Shown piece by piece: positions 4,045 through 17,227 of a stretch of 64,000 bases of DNA. Position 1 is the first letter of the stretch. Each line of letters starts with the position of its first letter. Position numbers and translations under genes: made by a program. A model generated the notes under the pieces. The model ran no database searches. It had not been told where the DNA came from and was given only the letters and a program-made list of their open reading frames with translations. Location: IMG/VR virus record IMGVR_UViG_3300015262_000001, positions 1-64,000 of that record; one strand, given 5' to 3'.

Positions 4045-6981
4045 ATGGCCGACATTACACAGAACGAATTGATCGCACTGGCCAACAACCCTATCCGTGG
4101 GGTAAACCGTGTTGTCAATCAGGTTGAGAACGACTACTTTGCCAAGTCGGTAAAACTCAATAGCAAGACACACCCATTTGTCTTCGGTACTGACATCATT
4201 TTGGGTTCCGCTTACGGGATCCTGAACCGCATCGATGATGCTGTTGCCAAGATGTTTCCTGCACACGCCCGTAGTACCGCAGACCTCAGCCGTCACATGT
4301 CTGAGGAAGAACAAGTAGGTATGTTCGGCACACCGTCGATCATGGACCTGCAATACGCGATCAACACTGCTGTCTTTATGTCCCTGGCTAAGGACGTAAC
4401 GGTAACGCTGGGCAAGAGCACTTTCACGTACAAAATGCTTCTGTTGCCAAAGGACACCGAACTCACCTTCGGCGGGTATACCTTTGGCATCGAGAACGGT
4501 GTAGAGATACGCTACAGCGAGCAGACGGGTTACCAGGTGGTTTATGACGACTCCACCAACAACCCGCTTAATCCAATCGCCAACAACCTCCTGAAGCGTG
4601 TTGTAACACCTAACGGTTACCTGACGATCGTTATCCCTTGCCGTCAGTTGGTCTGCTTGCCAACAGAGAACCTGACCTCCAACCAAAGCTCTGGTTGCAG
4701 TGGCGAAGTTAGCTTCCCTGACTACCTGTTCGCAGTTCGTGCGTTCCAGACAGTGGGTGGGGTAAAGTCTGAACTTCTGGTGAGCTATGACCAGGATGTG
4801 TTCGATCCAAACACCGCTACCCTGGCTTTGAGTCTGGATGTCAGTAACCAGAAGTTTGGTTACAAGATTCCTGATGTCTACATTGCCAACGGTCTGGGTA
4901 TTGGGTCGATCGACATCTACACCTACACCACCAAAGGCGAGTTGTTGAAGGACTTTACTCAGACTGCTCTGGGTGATGTGGGGGTTAACTACCAGGACTA
5001 TCGTTTCGGCGCTGGTACTCTGGGGCCTTTCTCCAATGCACTGAAGTCCTCGGGTGGCATGGCTTGGCGTGCGATGACGTCAACCTCTGGTGGTAGCAAC
5101 GCTATTCCGTTTGCTCAGATGAAAGCTTCCTTTATCAACGGACGTCGTCAGCGTAACCTTCCGATCACTGAGAACAACCTGATTGGTACCGTGGAGAACT
5201 ACGGTTACAACTCGGTTAAGTCGATTGACTACTTGACCAAGCGCAGCTACTCGTTGACCAAGGAACTTCGGATCCAGGACAACAAGAAGCTGTTTGCGCC
5301 TATGGCGTGCTTTGTTGGTAGTTACCTGGCGTCGGTCAACAGCCTGATCGGCAGTGGCGTAGTTATCGACAACGGATCCAGGATCACCATTCCGCACAAC
5401 GTGCTATTCGATATTAGCCAGCCAACCACCGTGTTGATCAACCAGATTACCAAGAACGCCTACGAAGCCAGAAGCAACGAAGGCAAGGTTGATCTGGTAG
5501 CCAGTACCACGCTGGTGTACACACCGTTCTACTATGTGATGGACCTGACCAACTCCCAAGCGGTGTTGCGTACCTATCACCTGGATGAACCCAAGTTCAA
5601 GAGCCAGACGTTTAAGGCTGAGAACAGTCTGTTGGGTATTGACGTGGGTGTGGGTACGGTAGCGATCGAGCAGAACGATGCCGGGTATCTGATCACTGTG
5701 GTTACGGCCTCCGGTAAGAGCTACCAGGAACTGGATGATTCCACCCTGGGTGTTCAACTGTCGGTACAGCCTGAAGACACCAACAGCCTGGCAAGCATTG
5801 CAGGTACGCTGTATGGCCTGACTGAAGATGGTGAGCGGATCTGGCAGTTTGCTTTGGACAGCCGTTTCGACGTTGATGTTAACGACGTGATTTACTTCAC
5901 CAACTTTGTGCAGTTCGGTAACACCCAGCCAACCACTGGTGTGCCTCTGGAACTGGACATGACGTTTATCTTCACCTTCCAGGGCGATAAGGCTAACACA
6001 GCTACCTCATCGGATGATAAGATCGACCAGAGCCTGTTCCCGGTGCCGATGGTGGCTATTATCGAAACCCAGTACAACGTAGCACTGGGTCGTAAGCTGG
6101 GGAACCTGTACAGCCGTATACGTCCTCTGGTCGGTGAAGCGCAGTTCAAGAAGTACGGAGTGGATGTTCCATTCACCTACCCGGAAACAATCTATAAACG
6201 TACCGACGACGACCTGAAGGAAATCATCTTTGTTGATGGTGTGGCTCAGGTAGAGCACCATGCAGGCGACATGATGTACGATAACAACGTACCTCCTCGT
6301 GTCATGCTGGAATACACCAAAGACGACTACATGATGGACGGTGAGGGTAATTACATTGAAGTGGCTCCTCGTGAGAAACTCTACCACTGGGACTTCATTG
6401 GTTTCGACGGTGCTTACTACTTCAGTCATGATGTCTATGACGAACAGTTTGCCCAAGAGACCAAAGACTACTTCGTGAACGTGATCAGTCAAGACATGGC
6501 TTACTTTGCATCGTCTGCGCTTGATCAAACTAGCCTGGTCTACCAGCCGCGTAACAAGCTGGGTTATCAGAAGGTAGTGGTCAACAGCAACTACACCTCG
6601 TACCTGCGTCAAGACCTGAGCTTTGTGGTCACCTACTACCTGACTGCATCGGGTATGAAGAACCAAAGCTTGAAGGACTCCCTGGATGCCAGTACTCCGC
6701 AGACACTTAACTTGGGTCTGTTCGGAACTACCACGTTCAGTTCAAACGACTTGGCATGGCAGTTGAAAGATGGTACGTCAAGTGAAGTGGTGGCAGTTAA
6801 GCTGAGCGCCCTGGCCGGTGACAGTACGGTTGACGTGATCAGTAACGCGGATGACCTGACAGGGTTCAGCATTCGTAAGCTGCTGCAACAGAGTTCTGAT
6901 GGTTTGTTGTCGATTAAGGAAGACATTGATATCGTCTTCTTGCCGCATGACGTATCCATGGTCAACATGGGTCCGGTGTAA
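4045..6981 (+). CDS. Large baseplate wedge-like structural protein (T4 gp6-like), phiKZ gp87-like
   Basis: 978 aa. The segment TSTSGGSNAIPFAQMK...ITENNL resembles the GG.D.E...IR...VT..DY signature of gp6/baseplate-J proteins; synteny supports it. Confidence 0.55.
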   Translation: MADITQNELIALANNPIRGVNRVVNQVENDYFAKSVKLNSKTHPFVFGTDIILGSAYGILNRIDDAVAKMFPAHARSTADLSRHMSEEEQVGMFGTPSIMDLQYAINTAVFMSLAKDVTVTLGKSTFTYKMLLLPKDTELTFGGYTFGIENGVEIRYSEQTGYQVVYDDSTNNPLNPIANNLLKRVVTPNGYLTIVIPCRQLVCLPTENLTSNQSSGCSGEVSFPDYLFAVRAFQTVGGVKSELLVSYDQDVFDPNTATLALSLDVSNQKFGYKIPDVYIANGLGIGSIDIYTYTTKGELLKDFTQTALGDVGVNYQDYRFGAGTLGPFSNALKSSGGMAWRAMTSTSGGSNAIPFAQMKASFINGRRQRNLPITENNLIGTVENYGYNSVKSIDYLTKRSYSLTKELRIQDNKKLFAPMACFVGSYLASVNSLIGSGVVIDNGSRITIPHNVLFDISQPTTVLINQITKNAYEARSNEGKVDLVASTTLVYTPFYYVMDLTNSQAVLRTYHLDEPKFKSQTFKAENSLLGIDVGVGTVAIEQNDAGYLITVVTASGKSYQELDDSTLGVQLSVQPEDTNSLASIAGTLYGLTEDGERIWQFALDSRFDVDVNDVIYFTNFVQFGNTQPTTGVPLELDMTFIFTFQGDKANTATSSDDKIDQSLFPVPMVAIIETQYNVALGRKLGNLYSRIRPLVGEAQFKKYGVDVPFTYPETIYKRTDDDLKEIIFVDGVAQVEHHAGDMMYDNNVPPRVMLEYTKDDYMMDGEGNYIEVAPREKLYHWDFIGFDGAYYFSHDVYDEQFAQETKDYFVNVISQDMAYFASSALDQTSLVYQPRNKLGYQKVVVNSNYTSYLRQDLSFVVTYYLTASGMKNQSLKDSLDASTPQTLNLGLFGTTTFSSNDLAWQLKDGTSSEVVAVKLSALAGDSTVDVISNADDLTGFSIRKLLQQSSDGLLSIKEDIDIVFLPHDVSMVNMGPV

Positions 6982-14297: not shown

Positions 14298-14936
14298 TTA
14301 GACGTTGGTCAGGTAGCGGAAGTACTGGGTAACGTTTTCTTTACCCTTGCGATTAAGGTCAGTGATAACACTGGCCAGATCGATCAACGAGTGCAGCTTG
14401 TACCGCGCCTCCCAGTTCTTGGCGACCATGGTCAGGAACGAGACGTACGTGTGGTACAGGCGGATGGTCTGAGCCGGATACTTCTTGTCCAGACCCACGG
14501 TGTAGCGGAAGGCCAGACCACCGGAGAATACTTCGGCGTTGGCGCGGATGATGGTCAGCAGGTCATCAGTGACAACAGCGAACTGTTCGAAGTCGAGACG
14601 GAAAGAGTTGCCGATCGTTTCGATGAAACTGATCTGTTCGTCCTGCTCTTCCTTCTTGTCCTTGAAGCGCTTACGCCCAGCCAGGAATTCAATGTGACGG
14701 TTGATGCGCGCTACCATGACGTCGGTAGTGGTATCACCTTTGGCATTGATCATCTTGGCGATGCCGATGACCATTGGTTCTGCCTGGAAGGTAGCCTCAG
14801 CCGGAGCAGCCGCTTCTTTGGCAGGTTGGGTGATGACAACAGGAGCAGGGGCTTTAGCAACAGGTGCAGCAACCTCCTTTGCGTCATCACCACTGAGATC
14901 TTCGCTCTCAGGTGGCGTGTAATCTTGTTTGCTCAT
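14298..14936 (-). CDS. Hypothetical protein
   Basis: Likely start MSKQDY at 14936 (AAAGGG upstream); Pro/Ala-rich N-terminus and helical C-terminal domain. Confidence 0.75.
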   Translation of the reverse strand: MSKQDYTPPESEDLSGDDAKEVAAPVAKAPAPVVITQPAKEAAAPAEATFQAEPMVIGIAKMINAKGDTTTDVMVARINRHIEFLAGRKRFKDKKEEQDEQISFIETIGNSFRLDFEQFAVVTDDLLTIIRANAEVFSGGLAFRYTVGLDKKYPAQTIRLYHTYVSFLTMVAKNWEARYKLHSLIDLASVITDLNRKGKENVTQYFRYLTNV

Positions 14937-15041
14937 GAAAGGGCCCTTTCGTAGAGAGTTATAGGCAACCAGGAATATGGTTTCAGCATAAAATACGGCT
15001 TTACCCCTAGGGCCCGGTGGGACCCTAGAGGCAAGCTGCAC

Positions 15042-15575
15042 TTAGAACATTTTCTTATTCAAACCCAGTTGACGCATTATTTCCATCAAGTCTTTGTTGG
15101 TATCTCCCACCTTCGGCGGTTTATTACCGTCGGCATCAGGTGGGTTATCAATCTTGTCTCGCTGACTGCGTCCTTCACCTACACCCTGGATCAGGTCGTC
15201 GATCAGAAACATAGGCATTTCCATGTAATCCCTTAACGGCATGATCTCATGGAGTTTGTAGAACCCGTACTTCTTAGCGACAGCCTTAATCGACCACTCA
15301 TGGGTAAACTCGTGCTCCACAGGAATGTAAGCCACTGAAGAGAAAGGATCCATATTAGCGGGGGTGTAGTAGTTCATGTTCAGATCATGCAACATGGACT
15401 CGTTAAACGACATGGCTTCTGGGGTAAGATCTTTGGTAGACTTCCCCAGTAGCTGGTTGTTAACCTGATTGAACATAGGGCTGAAGACAATCCGACTGTC
15501 TACTCGGGGGATTATTCCGAGAGGGCTTCGGACTTGACTTTGTTTTGGACGGCCGTCTGCTTGAGCATCGCCCAC
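15042..15575 (-). CDS. Downstream frame of a putative tail-assembly-chaperone pair; probably read by -1 frameshift from the upstream gene
   Basis: None of the three candidate starts (15575, 15476, 15413) has a clear SD. The frame is open across the upstream T7 run. MPLRDYMEMPMFLIDDLI resembles the chaperone-T / T4 gp51-like motif by eye. Confidence 0.6.
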   Translation of the reverse strand: MGDAQADGRPKQSQVRSPLGIIPRVDSRIVFSPMFNQVNNQLLGKSTKDLTPEAMSFNESMLHDLNMNYYTPANMDPFSSVAYIPVEHEFTHEWSIKAVAKKYGFYKLHEIMPLRDYMEMPMFLIDDLIQGVGEGRSQRDKIDNPPDADGNKPPKVGDTNKDLMEIMRQLGLNKKMF

Positions 15576-17227
15576 TGGGTGAGGGTAAAAAAACTCATCA
15601 CTGGGTCGATTGGCGTGTAGCCCAACTTCCGATCCAGCAGGTTTTCAGGGTCTTCCAGATCACCCATGTTCTTGCGGCACTTCGGACACACGTAGTTACG
15701 TACACCCATAAAGGTACGCGACATGTACGGTGTCTTGTTCAGGATGAACTTGACGAGGTTACGGTTGAGGTCTTCCTGGTCACGCAGAACGTCCAGAATA
15801 CCGCCGTTGAACTCGTTGGGTTCGATCTCGCTGCGCGCGAATACCGTTTCTTCCTCGTCGGTGTTTTCCGCTGGCAGATCAACTTGACGCTGTACCCAGT
15901 GGATGAACTCAGTAGAACCGAGGTTGTTGTGGACCATCGTGACCTGAGTCTGGTACTCAGCAGGGTCAACGAGTTTGGTACGCAGCTCGGCCAGCTCAGG
16001 GTTGATTTCACCGATGAAGAAGTCGAACGCATCAAACGCTTCAGCCAAAGTAGGTGGAGCACATTCGAGGTACATCGACTTCTCGTCGTTATACACACGG
16101 TTGCTTTCCAGACCATAAGTCGAAGCACGGCTCAGGGCACGAGTCTCTTCCATGGTGTACTTGGCATGGCCGTTGATCAGGTTGGCATAGATCGCCTCAT
16201 CGGCATCCGTGGTGATGTGATGACGCTGACGCAGCAACTTGGACGCCTGTACCAGCTTGAAGGCTTCCCAGTCACACTTACCGGAGAAGCACCGCAGGTT
16301 CAGGTTGATACCCTTGGTGTTGGTCGACTCGATCAACGCCGTGATGATGGTATCCATGTCGGTCAACAGGATAACGTTGGAGAGCTGGTTGAAGTCAGCC
16401 AGGTCCGTTACGCTCGAGTTGGTGATACGCTTCGCCATGAAGTTCCAGATCACACGCATCGAAGCGATACGCGCCAGCACGGCACTGTTGTTACCGATCT
16501 GCTGAACATAGCCGGTGATGGTACGACGGATGTCGTTCATCAGTGCACCCATCTCGGTATGGTTGGTACGCGAGAAAGCAAACGATGCAAACGAGTCACG
16601 GCACAGCACGTCGTACGACAGCTTGTCAGCACCAGAGCCTGTTTTACGGGCAGCACGACGACGCATGTTTTCACGCGCAGAGAAACCCTGGGTGGAAGCA
16701 GAAGGTTTCTTGCCGACGATGTCACCGGTGTTAACACCACCACGGTTGAAGACGTTGCTGATGTCCGGCTCGTTCAGGATCGAGGTACGAATCTTCAGTT
16801 CGTCCTGAATCTCCGACATGAACGCATACAGGTCGGCCGCGTGGGTCATTACCTGATCAGACGTCTTGCCTGGGAATTCCTTCTCGATGTACTGGAGCCA
16901 ATCGGATTCAGCTTTGCTGAAGACTGACTCCGGCAGACGTTCTTGCTCGAACATCGCCTTGGAACCGCTGAAGGTCAACCAGCGACCGATAACGCTCTGG
17001 GCCTTCAGGATGTCTTCTTTACGGTTACCCAGGAAGACAGTCATGAAACCACCGTCCATTTGCTCTTCTTTAGTGAGATCGCGAATGACCTCATCTTCAG
17101 GAGCGACGATCTGCTTCATCGTGGTGTTTTGTGCGGTGTGTACTTCACGGTGCGTAGGTGCTACCACAACCGGGGTGTCAACAGCAGGAGCTTGTTGCTC
17201 CTGTGGTTCTTGAGGTTCAGTACTCAT
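15512..17227 (-). CDS. Putative baseplate-hub/tail assembly chaperone (T4 gp26-like) with two Cys pairs
   Basis: 571 aa containing LRCFSGKCDW and YVCPKCRK. The function is an inference. Confidence 0.5.
   Translation of the reverse strand: MSTEPQEPQEQQAPAVDTPVVVAPTHREVHTAQNTTMKQIVAPEDEVIRDLTKEEQMDGGFMTVFLGNRKEDILKAQSVIGRWLTFSGSKAMFEQERLPESVFSKAESDWLQYIEKEFPGKTSDQVMTHAADLYAFMSEIQDELKIRTSILNEPDISNVFNRGGVNTGDIVGKKPSASTQGFSARENMRRRAARKTGSGADKLSYDVLCRDSFASFAFSRTNHTEMGALMNDIRRTITGYVQQIGNNSAVLARIASMRVIWNFMAKRITNSSVTDLADFNQLSNVILLTDMDTIITALIESTNTKGINLNLRCFSGKCDWEAFKLVQASKLLRQRHHITTDADEAIYANLINGHAKYTMEETRALSRASTYGLESNRVYNDEKSMYLECAPPTLAEAFDAFDFFIGEINPELAELRTKLVDPAEYQTQVTMVHNNLGSTEFIHWVQRQVDLPAENTDEEETVFARSEIEPNEFNGGILDVLRDQEDLNRNLVKFILNKTPYMSRTFMGVRNYVCPKCRKNMGDLEDPENLLDRKLGYTPIDPVMSFFTLTQWAMLKQTAVQNKVKSEALSE

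Follow-up and report, generated by a model that had tools for sequence, protein, structure and literature searches.

A conserved candidate -1 frameshift joining a jumbo-phage core gene to the reading frame downstream

A 571-residue gene of a phiKZ-like jumbo phage very likely uses a programmed -1 ribosomal frameshift, at a run of T's, to make a second protein of about 728 residues that is fused to what is annotated as the next gene. The same arrangement was found in all 37 related phage lineages that we examined, phiKZ included, and it is not annotated in any GenBank record that we opened. We found no prior description of it in the literature, nor any report of the trans-frame protein. Both the slip and its product are inferred from sequence.

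Anatomy of the gene pair and of the putative slippery site

The window analysed here is a stretch of 64,000 nucleotides of an IMG/VR contig of 228,597 bp with terminal repeats. A megablast search of the region against the phage collection found no match. The two reading frames considered here, referred to as A and B, lie on the minus strand, and comprise the following features:

15512..17227 (-), gene A, 0-frame product of 571 aa, with an SD-like AAGGAAG upstream of its ATG; Chimalliviridae core gene cg18, homologue of phiKZ gp77, EL ORF047 and Goslar gp081
15569..16681 (-), predicted T4 gp26-like (PF12322, baseplate hub assembly protein) fold within A, residues 183-553
16274-16291 (-), first Cys pair of A, C313/C318
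15677..15688 (-), second Cys pair, C514-P-K-C517; with C313/C318 a likely zinc site
15587..15593 (-), slippery heptamer T_TTT_TTT (AGT TTT TTT in the 0 frame; F546-F547)
15045..15593 (-), -1 frame segment read after the inferred slip, 183 codons including FF, giving a 728-aa A-B fusion
15515..15586 (-), dual-coding overlap: the last 24 codons of A (C-terminal helix) and the first -1 codons of the extension
15414..15511 (-), linker between the stop of A and Met61 of the -1 product (ATG 15413); it looks intergenic in annotations but is coding in the -1 frame
15066..15404 (-), conserved core of B (phrog_19747)
15042..15044 (-), stop codon (TAA) of the -1 frame product

The initial annotation had noted a T_TTT_TTT heptamer of anomalous codon choice near the 3' end of the 571-aa gene, and a downstream frame, open across the site, that lacks a Shine-Dalgarno sequence at any of its three possible starts. 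This observation is correct. The 0 frame reads GTG ATG AGT TTT TTT ACC, and the seven T's are the third base of AGT545 followed by the F546 and F547 codons. Elsewhere in A, Phe-Phe is encoded as GAC TTC TTC ATC; the Phe codons in A are TTT in 6 cases and TTC in 21, and AGT accounts for 3 of 37 Ser codons. The -1 frame is open from 15644, upstream of the heptamer, to the stop of B. A slip would give ...VMSFF-YPHPVGDAQADGR..., that is, 547 + 181 = 728 aa, as the initial annotation had stated; the junction would read ...VMSFFYPHPVGDAQADGR in the window and ...STFF-YFGGLEVK... in phiKZ. The three possible starts of B (GTG 15575, ATG 15476 and ATG 15413) have no SD-like sequence in the 18 nt upstream. 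DNA contigs of two sequencing runs cross the region without an indel, so the T7 run is not an assembly error.

Gene A was assigned to phrog_4585 (E 5.5e-96), and to cg18 on the basis of tblastn and HMM homologues and the core-gene table of Prichard et al. 2023, in which cg18 is listed as hypothetical. The core of B was assigned to phrog_19747 by hmmscan (E 1.3e-29, residues 58-170 of the 177-aa ORF) and by an alignment of 16 lineages. Both PHROGs families are of unknown function.

Conservation of frame, site and coding signature

One in-phase heptamer in a single genome could be due to chance. To determine whether the arrangement is conserved, we compared 37 lineages at 20-92% identity, namely the window, 12 metagenomic relatives and 24 named phages including EL, RisingSun, OBP, phiKZ, PhiPA3, Goslar, SPN3US and PCH45. 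This diversity was sampled through tblastn and through searches for contigs encoding the proteins; a search for related loci with single distant proteins found nothing. In 37 of 37 lineages B lies in the -1 frame of A, i.e., in 33 of 33 lineages with a full B and in 4 of 4 lineages lacking the FF motif. In each lineage the -1 frame is open from before the homologous site as far as the sequence goes, to the stop of B wherever it is on the contig. In the 33 lineages there is no -1 stop from the site to the stop of B, against 4-19 stops in the 0 frame and 7-29 in the +1 frame, and the -1 segment has a constant length of 156-184 codons. By contrast, the flanking gene pairs are spread over all three frames: the gene preceding A and A itself are related by -1 in 15, 0 in 7 and +1 in 11 cases, and B and the next gene by 0 in 8, -1 in 9 and +1 in 7. 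Conservation across 37 lineages could not be due to chance.

A slippery motif in phase sits at the homologous position in each lineage: T_TTT_TTY in 31, G_TTT_TTT in 2, G_GGT_TTY in 2, and the non-canonical G_GTT_TTT (GTT TTT ACN) in 2. In the 31 lineages the residue before Phe-Phe varies (S/A/N/T/V/L/G/Y), but its codon ends in T. Phe-Phe is itself nearly invariant at the protein level, and thus part of the conservation of the T-run has a protein explanation. However, where Phe-Phe is lost, the homologous position carries G_GGT_TTC or G_GGT_TTT, which are canonical X_XXY_YYZ motifs with homopolymers of only 3-4 nt.

We next asked whether the stretch between the stop of A and the first possible start of B evolves as coding sequence. 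Among close relatives, differences in the linker by codon position are 36, 29 and 84 for the first, second and third positions, respectively, with 62 synonymous against 43 non-synonymous codon changes; this third-position excess equals that of the B core. The first possible start codon in the -1 frame is not conserved, varying from codon 30 to 68 after the site (codon 7 where a GTG lies inside the overlap), and in many lineages the first ATG, GTG or TTG lies 50-68 codons after the site, downstream of sequence that aligns across lineages. In the overlap, synonymous differences in A fall from 0.28 to 0.05, a drop of about five-fold (Fisher p 5e-11, although the pairs are not independent), and all three codon positions are constrained; the 20 nt after the site are conserved at all codon positions. 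None of 150 family representatives, out of 171, is an in-frame fusion, and A always ends soon after the motif.

To assess whether a stimulatory element accompanies the site, we examined RNA folding and upstream sequence. No such element was found: downstream MFE z-scores are about 0 in 24 lineages, RNAalifold predicts no pairs, and there is no SD-like sequence within 30 nt upstream. This feature is not obligatory for programmed -1 frameshifting, as lambda G/GT lacks one.

Proposed recoding and its alternatives

The interpretation offered in the initial annotation, a tail-chaperone frameshift of the G/GT type, is supported in part. Its central claim, that a programmed -1 frameshift near the 3' end of the 571-aa gene fuses it to the downstream ORF, is strongly supported by the comparative evidence. 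The findings that it had named as refuting were looked for and not obtained; that is, homologues keep the slippery site, they always overlap in the -1 frame, and they have no conserved initiation site for B. Its comparison of the two Cys pairs in A with T4 gp26-type hub chaperones is also borne out. By contrast, A and B are not members of the lambda/P2 G/GT tail-assembly-chaperone families, and the proposed chaperone-T-like motif in B has no support from Pfam, PHROGs, the ESM Atlas or the fold. Nor is the feature, for which the initial annotation knew of no phiKZ-like precedent, peculiar to this phage, as it extends to phiKZ itself (gp77 / gp76.4).

We propose, with good though not complete confidence, that A and B form one frameshifted coding unit. 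In this model most ribosomes would translate A to its own stop, giving a 571-aa protein whose last 30 residues form a C-terminal helix. A fraction of ribosomes, with tRNA-Phe in the P and A sites on TTT TTT, would slip back one base on T_TTT_TTT and continue in the -1 frame, through a proline-rich linker (YPHPV...) and into the B domain. The resulting fusion of about 728 aa would lack most of the terminal helix and carry B instead. B probably has no dedicated initiation site; if so, the frameshift efficiency sets the ratio of the two forms, as in lambda G/GT. Because A is a greatly enlarged relative of T4 gp26, the pair is most likely a tail/baseplate morphogenesis factor made in two C-terminal versions. 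Our analysis establishes the anatomy of the pair, its conservation, the coding signature of the linker and, from a model, the fold of A; that the slip occurs, that it is ribosomal, its efficiency, and any role in hub assembly, including absence from the finished virion, are inferences.

An alternative, which we regard as unlikely, is transcriptional slippage, in which the phage or host RNA polymerase inserts an extra U in the T-run, so that a subset of mRNAs encodes the fusion in one frame. The protein outcome would be the same. The site is a homopolymer of 6-8 T in 33 of 37 lineages, and chimalliviruses use their own unusual RNA polymerases, whose propensity to slip might differ. However, two lineages keep the -1 arrangement with G_GGT_TTC or G_GGT_TTT, and two with a T5 run, which are too short for known polymerase slippage; this usually needs about 8-9 nt or more and is independent of codon phase, whereas the motif is always in the X_XXY_YYZ phase. 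RNA-library contigs of relatives also cross the run without an indel, but this is weak evidence, since assembled contigs show only the majority form and cannot reveal minority slipped transcripts.

Still less likely is that B is an ordinary separate gene with its own, possibly weak or non-canonical, start, the -1 overlap and T-run being by-products of conserved Phe-Phe and compact gene packing. GenBank annotators and gene callers do call B separately, and some lineages (AH04, RP12, L025) have an ATG soon after the stop of A. This reading is countered by the single frame relation in 37 of 37 lineages, the open frame with a coding signature upstream of any start codon, the absence of an SD-like sequence at the candidate starts in the window, and the suppression of synonymous change in the overlap. 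Moreover, the called starts fall at codons 30 to 105 after the site and are not homologous, and in phiKZ the 218-nt 'gap' is entirely open in the -1 frame. Lastly, a homopolymer sequencing error, to which some platforms are prone, or a recent frameshift mutation is effectively refuted by the occurrence of the same split in 37 independently sequenced lineages, by the agreement of two DNA assemblies on T7, by the lack of in-frame fusions among 150 of 171 family representatives, and by the 0-frame tail after the site, which is conserved (...EALSE stop; 21-24 codons in the window's branch) and modelled as a confident helix (542-570).

If the fusion is made, more than 280 deposited jumbo-phage records (69 and 219 tblastn matches), including the models phiKZ, PhiPA3, 201phi2-1-like phages, Goslar, SPN3US, PCH45 and EL, may mis-annotate a core gene pair. 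In each record opened here the small downstream ORF is given an arbitrary start, and in some a 100-240 nt 'intergenic gap' is left. In practice, proteomics databases, Tn-seq essentiality maps and the engineering of these therapeutic-candidate phages should then treat A and B as one unit and avoid disturbing the heptamer. The arrangement also assigns a likely role, in baseplate or tail hub assembly, to cg18, and would add a family-wide recoding event to a phage group in which we could find none described.

Predicted fold of A and comparison with known systems

To gain insight into the function of A, we examined its AlphaFold model (pLDDT 93.4). The model contains a complete T4 gp26-like fold: an ESM Atlas fold search gave TM 0.74 by the target, with 255 aligned residues of a 260-aa PF12322 representative and rmsd 4.1, and BFVD matches named 'baseplate hub assembly protein, T4-like' were obtained at E 8e-4 to 0.1 and probability 0.7-1.0. 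PF12322 clusters make up 45 of the 100 nearest ESM clusters. Among 133 family members, in alignments built from metagenomic homologues, C313, C318 and C514 are invariant and C517 is present in at least 90%. The window's A reaches no Pfam threshold, and A, phiKZ gp77, Goslar gp81 and SPN3US gp39 have no PF12322 hit; only 1 of 87 distant members hits this family, at 1.2e-5, whereas T4 gp26 itself scores 8.8e-64. Comparison of the family with the single T4 gp26 sequence by hhalign aligned only the CPxC region, placing C514-P-K-C517 on the CPEC of T4 gp26, at 41% and 4% probability. The inferred baseplate role rests on fold similarity to a T4 protein whose own mechanism is poorly understood. It is in line with such a role, though only indirectly, that Goslar gp81/gp82 are not mentioned in the main text of the paper that models 28 Goslar virion proteins, which fits an assembly factor.

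Solved structures gave nothing further. Sequence profiles against the PDB returned only zinc-finger noise, Foldseek against PDB and Swiss-Prot gave E > 0.9, and a wide VIA-align search matched only generic helical hairpins to residues 69-141. The B extension modelled poorly (pLDDT 52), and an ESM-feature search with B gave no family; a P2 GpE cluster at 0.82 is at chance level and is not counted. The label 'ZipA-like cell division protein' on some homologues has no support here.

T4 gp26 and A both have a C-terminal CPxC, and in both cases one gene would give two products, as T4 has an annotated 26' CDS (gp26*). However, T4 gp26 is 208 aa, lacks the N-terminal 180 residues and the IPxD...FF(T)L tail, and ends about 10 residues after CPEC. 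Its second product arises by internal initiation in the same frame, not by frameshifting.

In the lambda G/GT and P2 E/E+E' tail assembly chaperones, a -1 slip near the 3' end of a morphogenesis gene is reported to give a short and a C-terminally extended product from one start, in a ratio set by frameshift efficiency (Levin, Hendrix & Casjens 1993; Xu, Hendrix & Duda 2004). There too, the downstream ORF lacks its own start, conservation of the frame relation is the main evidence, and no strong RNA stimulator is present. By inference from sequence, the A-B pair shares this organization. Nevertheless, A is 571 aa rather than about 140, the site is T_TTT_TTY rather than G_GGA_AAG, no partners are known, and neither A nor B has a Pfam hit, including to the Phage_TAC families, at E <= 0.1. 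The pair does not lie between tube and tape-measure genes, and we rejected a tail-gene-cluster context: its conserved neighbours are a divergent unit (virion RNA polymerase beta' plus a virion protein), two small ORFs and, in many lineages, DNA polymerase. Residues 190-331 of A match a Phage_TAC_4 cluster representative at TM 0.60 over 103 residues, a weak resemblance over a short stretch and only a lead.

A more speculative and, in our view, improbable hypothesis is that cg18 with its frameshift extension is the missing tail-assembly-chaperone equivalent of phiKZ-like contractile tails and, by homology, of T4-like tails, the T4 gp26/PF12322 family being divergent relatives of lambda-type chaperones. 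One chaperone gene with two C-termini in a fixed ratio would then be a rule kept across long-tailed phages by different means, i.e., a -1 frameshift here and internal initiation (gp26*) in T4, and the B domain would recruit a hub or tube partner. The pair offers a tractable test of whether the two-product logic of tail assembly chaperones extends to T4 gp26-type proteins.

The proposed slip may also be compared with those of E. coli dnaX (tau/gamma) and of IS elements (IS911/IS3), in which tandem slippage on an X_XXY_YYZ heptamer in a bacterial translation system yields two proteins with a shared N-terminus. These use A_AAA_AAG-type sites with an upstream SD-like element and a downstream hairpin, neither of which is detectable here, and in dnaX the shifted product is the shorter one.

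Slippery site and reading frames of gene A

To establish whether the sequence around the end of gene A is compatible with a programmed -1 frameshift, we first examined the reading frames of the window in this region. The relevant features, all on the minus strand, are the following.
15512-17227: gene A, encoding 571 aa and preceded by a good SD-like sequence
15593-15587: seven T's, in phase as T_TTT_TTT (0-frame GTG ATG AGT TTT TTT ACC)
15512-15514: TAA stop codon of A, reached 24 codons after the site
15644 onwards: -1 frame, open across the heptamer
15042-15044: TAA stop codon of the -1 frame, which ends the downstream ORF, B

A tandem slip at this site would give ...M544-S-F-F547 followed by YPHPVGDAQADGR..., a product of 728 aa. 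Codon usage in A is TTC 21 and TTT 6 for Phe, with two of the six TTT codons located at the site, while AGT accounts for 3 of 37 Ser codons. The three possible starts of the downstream ORF have nothing SD-like upstream, and DNA contigs from two runs cross the region with no indel. The initial annotation had described this heptamer, its unusual codon choice, the open -1 frame, the absence of SD sequences and a fusion of about 728 aa, and its observation proved accurate in every detail that could be checked. The gene that follows B (14298-15041) is listed as 247 aa from a GTG that abuts the stop of B, but an ATG at 14936 (MSKQDY...), preceded by GAAAGGG, is the more likely start; relatives have 208-226 aa called here. 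Contigs from two independent RNA libraries of relatives, from peat and soil, all end exactly at 15615, 22 nt upstream of the T-run in the sense of the gene, and one carries 11 nt of Illumina adapter at that end. This could be an RNA end or processing site just upstream of the slip site, or a break in the assembly graph.

Conservation of the frame relation across related phages

To determine whether this arrangement is more than chance, we compared the locus across related phages. A belongs to phrog_4585, and the conserved core of B to phrog_19747, whose profile begins only at about residue 58 of the 177-aa ORF. A tblastn search found homologues of A at 23-38% identity in RisingSun/Joad, EL-like, FishSpeaker, Miami-like, Vibrio, Aeromonas and OBP-like jumbo phages, and in several of them the similarity to B started inside the overlap with A. 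We sampled 15 loci from these phages, eight metagenomic relatives at 42-92% identity, and phiKZ itself, which was found with an HMM of the family (gp77, E 7.6e-17), together with nine further lineages of the phiKZ branch, namely PhiPA3, Goslar, RSL2, PCH45, SPN3US, Ea35-70, Wellington, pir03 and RP12.

In this sample B lies in the -1 frame of A in 33/33 lineages. By contrast, the control pair formed by the upstream gene and A is distributed as -1:15, 0:7, +1:11, and that formed by B and the next gene as 0:8, -1:9, +1:7. From the site to the stop of B, the -1 frame contains 0 stops in all 33 lineages, against 4-19 in the 0 frame and 7-29 in the +1 frame, and the length of the -1 segment is 156-184 codons. 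The homologous position always carries nnT TTT TTT or nnT TTT TTC, with two exceptions that read G TTT TTT. The residue before the site varies (S, A, N, T, V, L, G, Y), but its codon ends in T. In phiKZ, ACT TTT TTT lies 11 codons before the stop of gp77, and the -1 frame then runs 167 codons through an annotated 'gap' of 218 nt into PHIKZ076.4. In PCH45 (locus L032 of our sample, about 2233-2380) the site, GGT TTT TTT, lies 44 codons before the stop of A instead of 11-24, and thus the 0-frame tail is much longer and the overlap is 148 nt.

The most stringent test is provided by family members that lack Phe-Phe. Of 166 family representatives of at least 400 aa, 150 have FF near the C-terminus, and we retrieved the DNA of four that do not. 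All four still have the downstream ORF in the -1 frame, open across the site, which brings the tally to 37/37. Two of them carry CTG GGT TTC or ATG GGT TTT, i.e., G_GGT_TTY, which are canonical X_XXY_YYZ heptamers in phase with homopolymers of only 3-4 nt; the other two carry GTT TTT ACN. The replacement of one slippery heptamer by another at the same place is what selection for ribosomal slippage predicts, and is hard to reconcile with polymerase stuttering or with coincidence.

Coding signature of the overlap and the linker

To determine whether the apparently intergenic stretch is translated, we located the first ATG, GTG or TTG in the -1 frame after the site. It falls at non-homologous positions, and, where no GTG lies inside the overlap, at codons 30 to 68: codon 63 in RisingSun, 59 (a TTG) in EL, 68 in D9, 64 in pEt-SU, and 57 and 49 in the sampled loci L026 and L023. 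Annotated or called starts of B range from codon 30 to 105. The window's ATG at codon 40 is Thr or Val in its closest relatives. In the loci L001-L015 and L029-L037, the B homologues have arbitrary annotated starts, 18-237 nt after the stop of A where the two ORFs do not abut or overlap; in phiKZ (NC_004629, 71442-71902) the 218-nt gap is unannotated, and the 80-aa PHIKZ076.4 is only the C-terminal half of the -1 segment.

We then compared three segments in the -1 frame among four close relatives, which are 84-92% identical in A. Between the stop of A and Met61, differences at codon positions 1, 2 and 3 number 36, 29 and 84, with 62 synonymous and 43 non-synonymous codon changes. In the B core the corresponding figures are 102, 71 and 246, with 175 synonymous and 142 non-synonymous changes. 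The linker therefore shows the same third-position excess as the B core. In the overlap (162 codon comparisons) the differences are 14, 9 and 7, with all three positions nearly frozen. In the frame of A itself, synonymous differences fall from 0.28 over the gene to 0.05 in residues 545-571 (Fisher p 5e-11, although the pairs are not independent). The synonymous rate is already low (0.10-0.15, against the mean of 0.28) for about 45 codons upstream of the slip site, in residues about 500-549 (15580-15730), only part of which is open in the -1 frame. We therefore infer that translation enters the -1 frame upstream of the stop of A without a start codon.

To assess whether fusions of A and B also exist in a single frame, we carried out a profile search of 1.84 billion representatives, which found 171 family clusters. 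Among the best 150, all full-length members are 455-657 aa and end shortly after the motif, and none is an in-frame A-B fusion. The 0-frame tail is conserved, as ...EALSE in the window's branch and ...EE.LS in the OBP/Aeromonas branch, and is modeled as a confident C-terminal helix, residues 542-570. Thus, both products look functional, and the shifted one would exchange the helix for a Pro-rich linker plus B. In the OBP/Aeromonas branch (loci L007-L013) an SD-like AGAGGA sequence is conserved about 12 nt before the stop of A (...CAAGAGGAnnnTCTTTCTTAA), with no start codon following.

Inferred mechanism and predicted relationships of the proteins

Tandem -1 slippage of two tRNA-Phe on T_TTT_TTY would allow perfect re-pairing. 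To identify a possible stimulator, we examined the RNA on both sides of the site, but none was found: downstream folds are no more stable than shuffled sequences (z about 0 in 24 lineages), RNAalifold predicts no pairs, and there is no SD-like sequence upstream. This resembles lambda G/GT, which has no strong stimulator, and suggests a low efficiency. About 20 nt immediately after the heptamer (15566-15586 in the window; ACCCTnACCCAGTTG in its branch) are conserved at all three codon positions in the window and in loci L001-L004 and L020-L027, among lineages only 35-90% identical in protein; this may reflect dual coding or an unrecognized element that stimulates frameshifting. A short hairpin (CTCGG...CCGAG) places the stop codon of A in its loop in the window, its closest relatives and RisingSun (window 15495-15520; L001 about 4595-4620), but other lineages have different small stems there, and the alignment fold gives it no support. 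Transcriptional slippage cannot be excluded for the lineages with T6-T8 runs, but the G_GGT_TTY lineages speak against it.

To gain insights into the nature of the two proteins, we combined profile searches with structure prediction. A is Chimalliviridae core gene cg18 (Goslar gp081, phiKZ gp077, RAY gp267), listed as a hypothetical protein in the supplement of Prichard et al. 2023 (PMC10299810). Pfam gives nothing for either A or B. An AlphaFold2 model of A built on 133 homologues is confident (pLDDT 93.4, pTM 0.91), and matches no solved structure; the weak PDB matches, such as MexA-type hairpins, are all accounted for by a long alpha-helical hairpin in the N-terminal extension (residues 69-141, 16805-17020), which is absent from T4 gp26-like proteins. 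In the ESM Atlas, however, residues 183-553 superpose on a 260-aa representative of a cluster in which 84% of members carry PF12322 (TM 0.74 by target, 255 aligned residues). In BFVD, after its own family, the model matches 250-290-aa proteins named baseplate hub assembly protein or chaperone, T4-like (E 8e-4 to 0.1, probability 0.7-1.0). T4 gp26 is the type member of PF12322 (8.8e-64), one of 87 distant family members of A hits PF12322 directly (1.2e-5), and PF12322 clusters make up 45 of the 100 nearest by language-model features. The C-terminal CPxC aligns with that of T4 gp26, and the two Cys pairs are conserved across the family, with C313, C318 and C514 invariant and C517 present in at least 90%. 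A shorter stretch, residues 190-331, resembles Phage_TAC_4 at TM 0.60, which we treat only as a lead. Several homologues of A, in hits that include L001 and L015, are annotated 'putative ZipA-like cell division protein', while others are called 'baseplate protein' or 'baseplate hub assembly protein'; the fold evidence favors the latter, and nothing in our data supports ZipA. The Goslar virion paper, which models 28 virion proteins, does not mention gp81 or gp82 in its main text, which fits an assembly factor but does not prove one. Searches with B did not identify a characterized family.

The arrangement would work like G/GT and E/E+E', in that two C-terminal versions of a morphogenesis protein are made from one start through a conserved -1 slip, but it is not a member of those families by sequence, size or genomic position. 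A is a remote structural relative of T4 gp26, as judged from its predicted fold; gene 26 of T4 also yields two products, but by an internal start (the 26' CDS). The interpretation given in the initial annotation is partly supported. The proposed frameshift is strongly supported by comparative genomics, the 'tail chaperone' label holds only as a functional analogy through the gp26-like fold, and the 'T-like motif' assigned to B is unsupported. The layout of the locus, its conservation, the coding signature of the linker and the modeled fold of A come directly from these analyses, whereas the occurrence of the slip, its ribosomal nature, its efficiency and a role in assembly are inferred. We found no description of this frameshift in the literature, although subscription-only papers lay outside the search and priority thus cannot be excluded. 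The feature is family-wide, concerns the main model jumbo phages and is directly testable, and none of the 25 GenBank records inspected carries a joined CDS.
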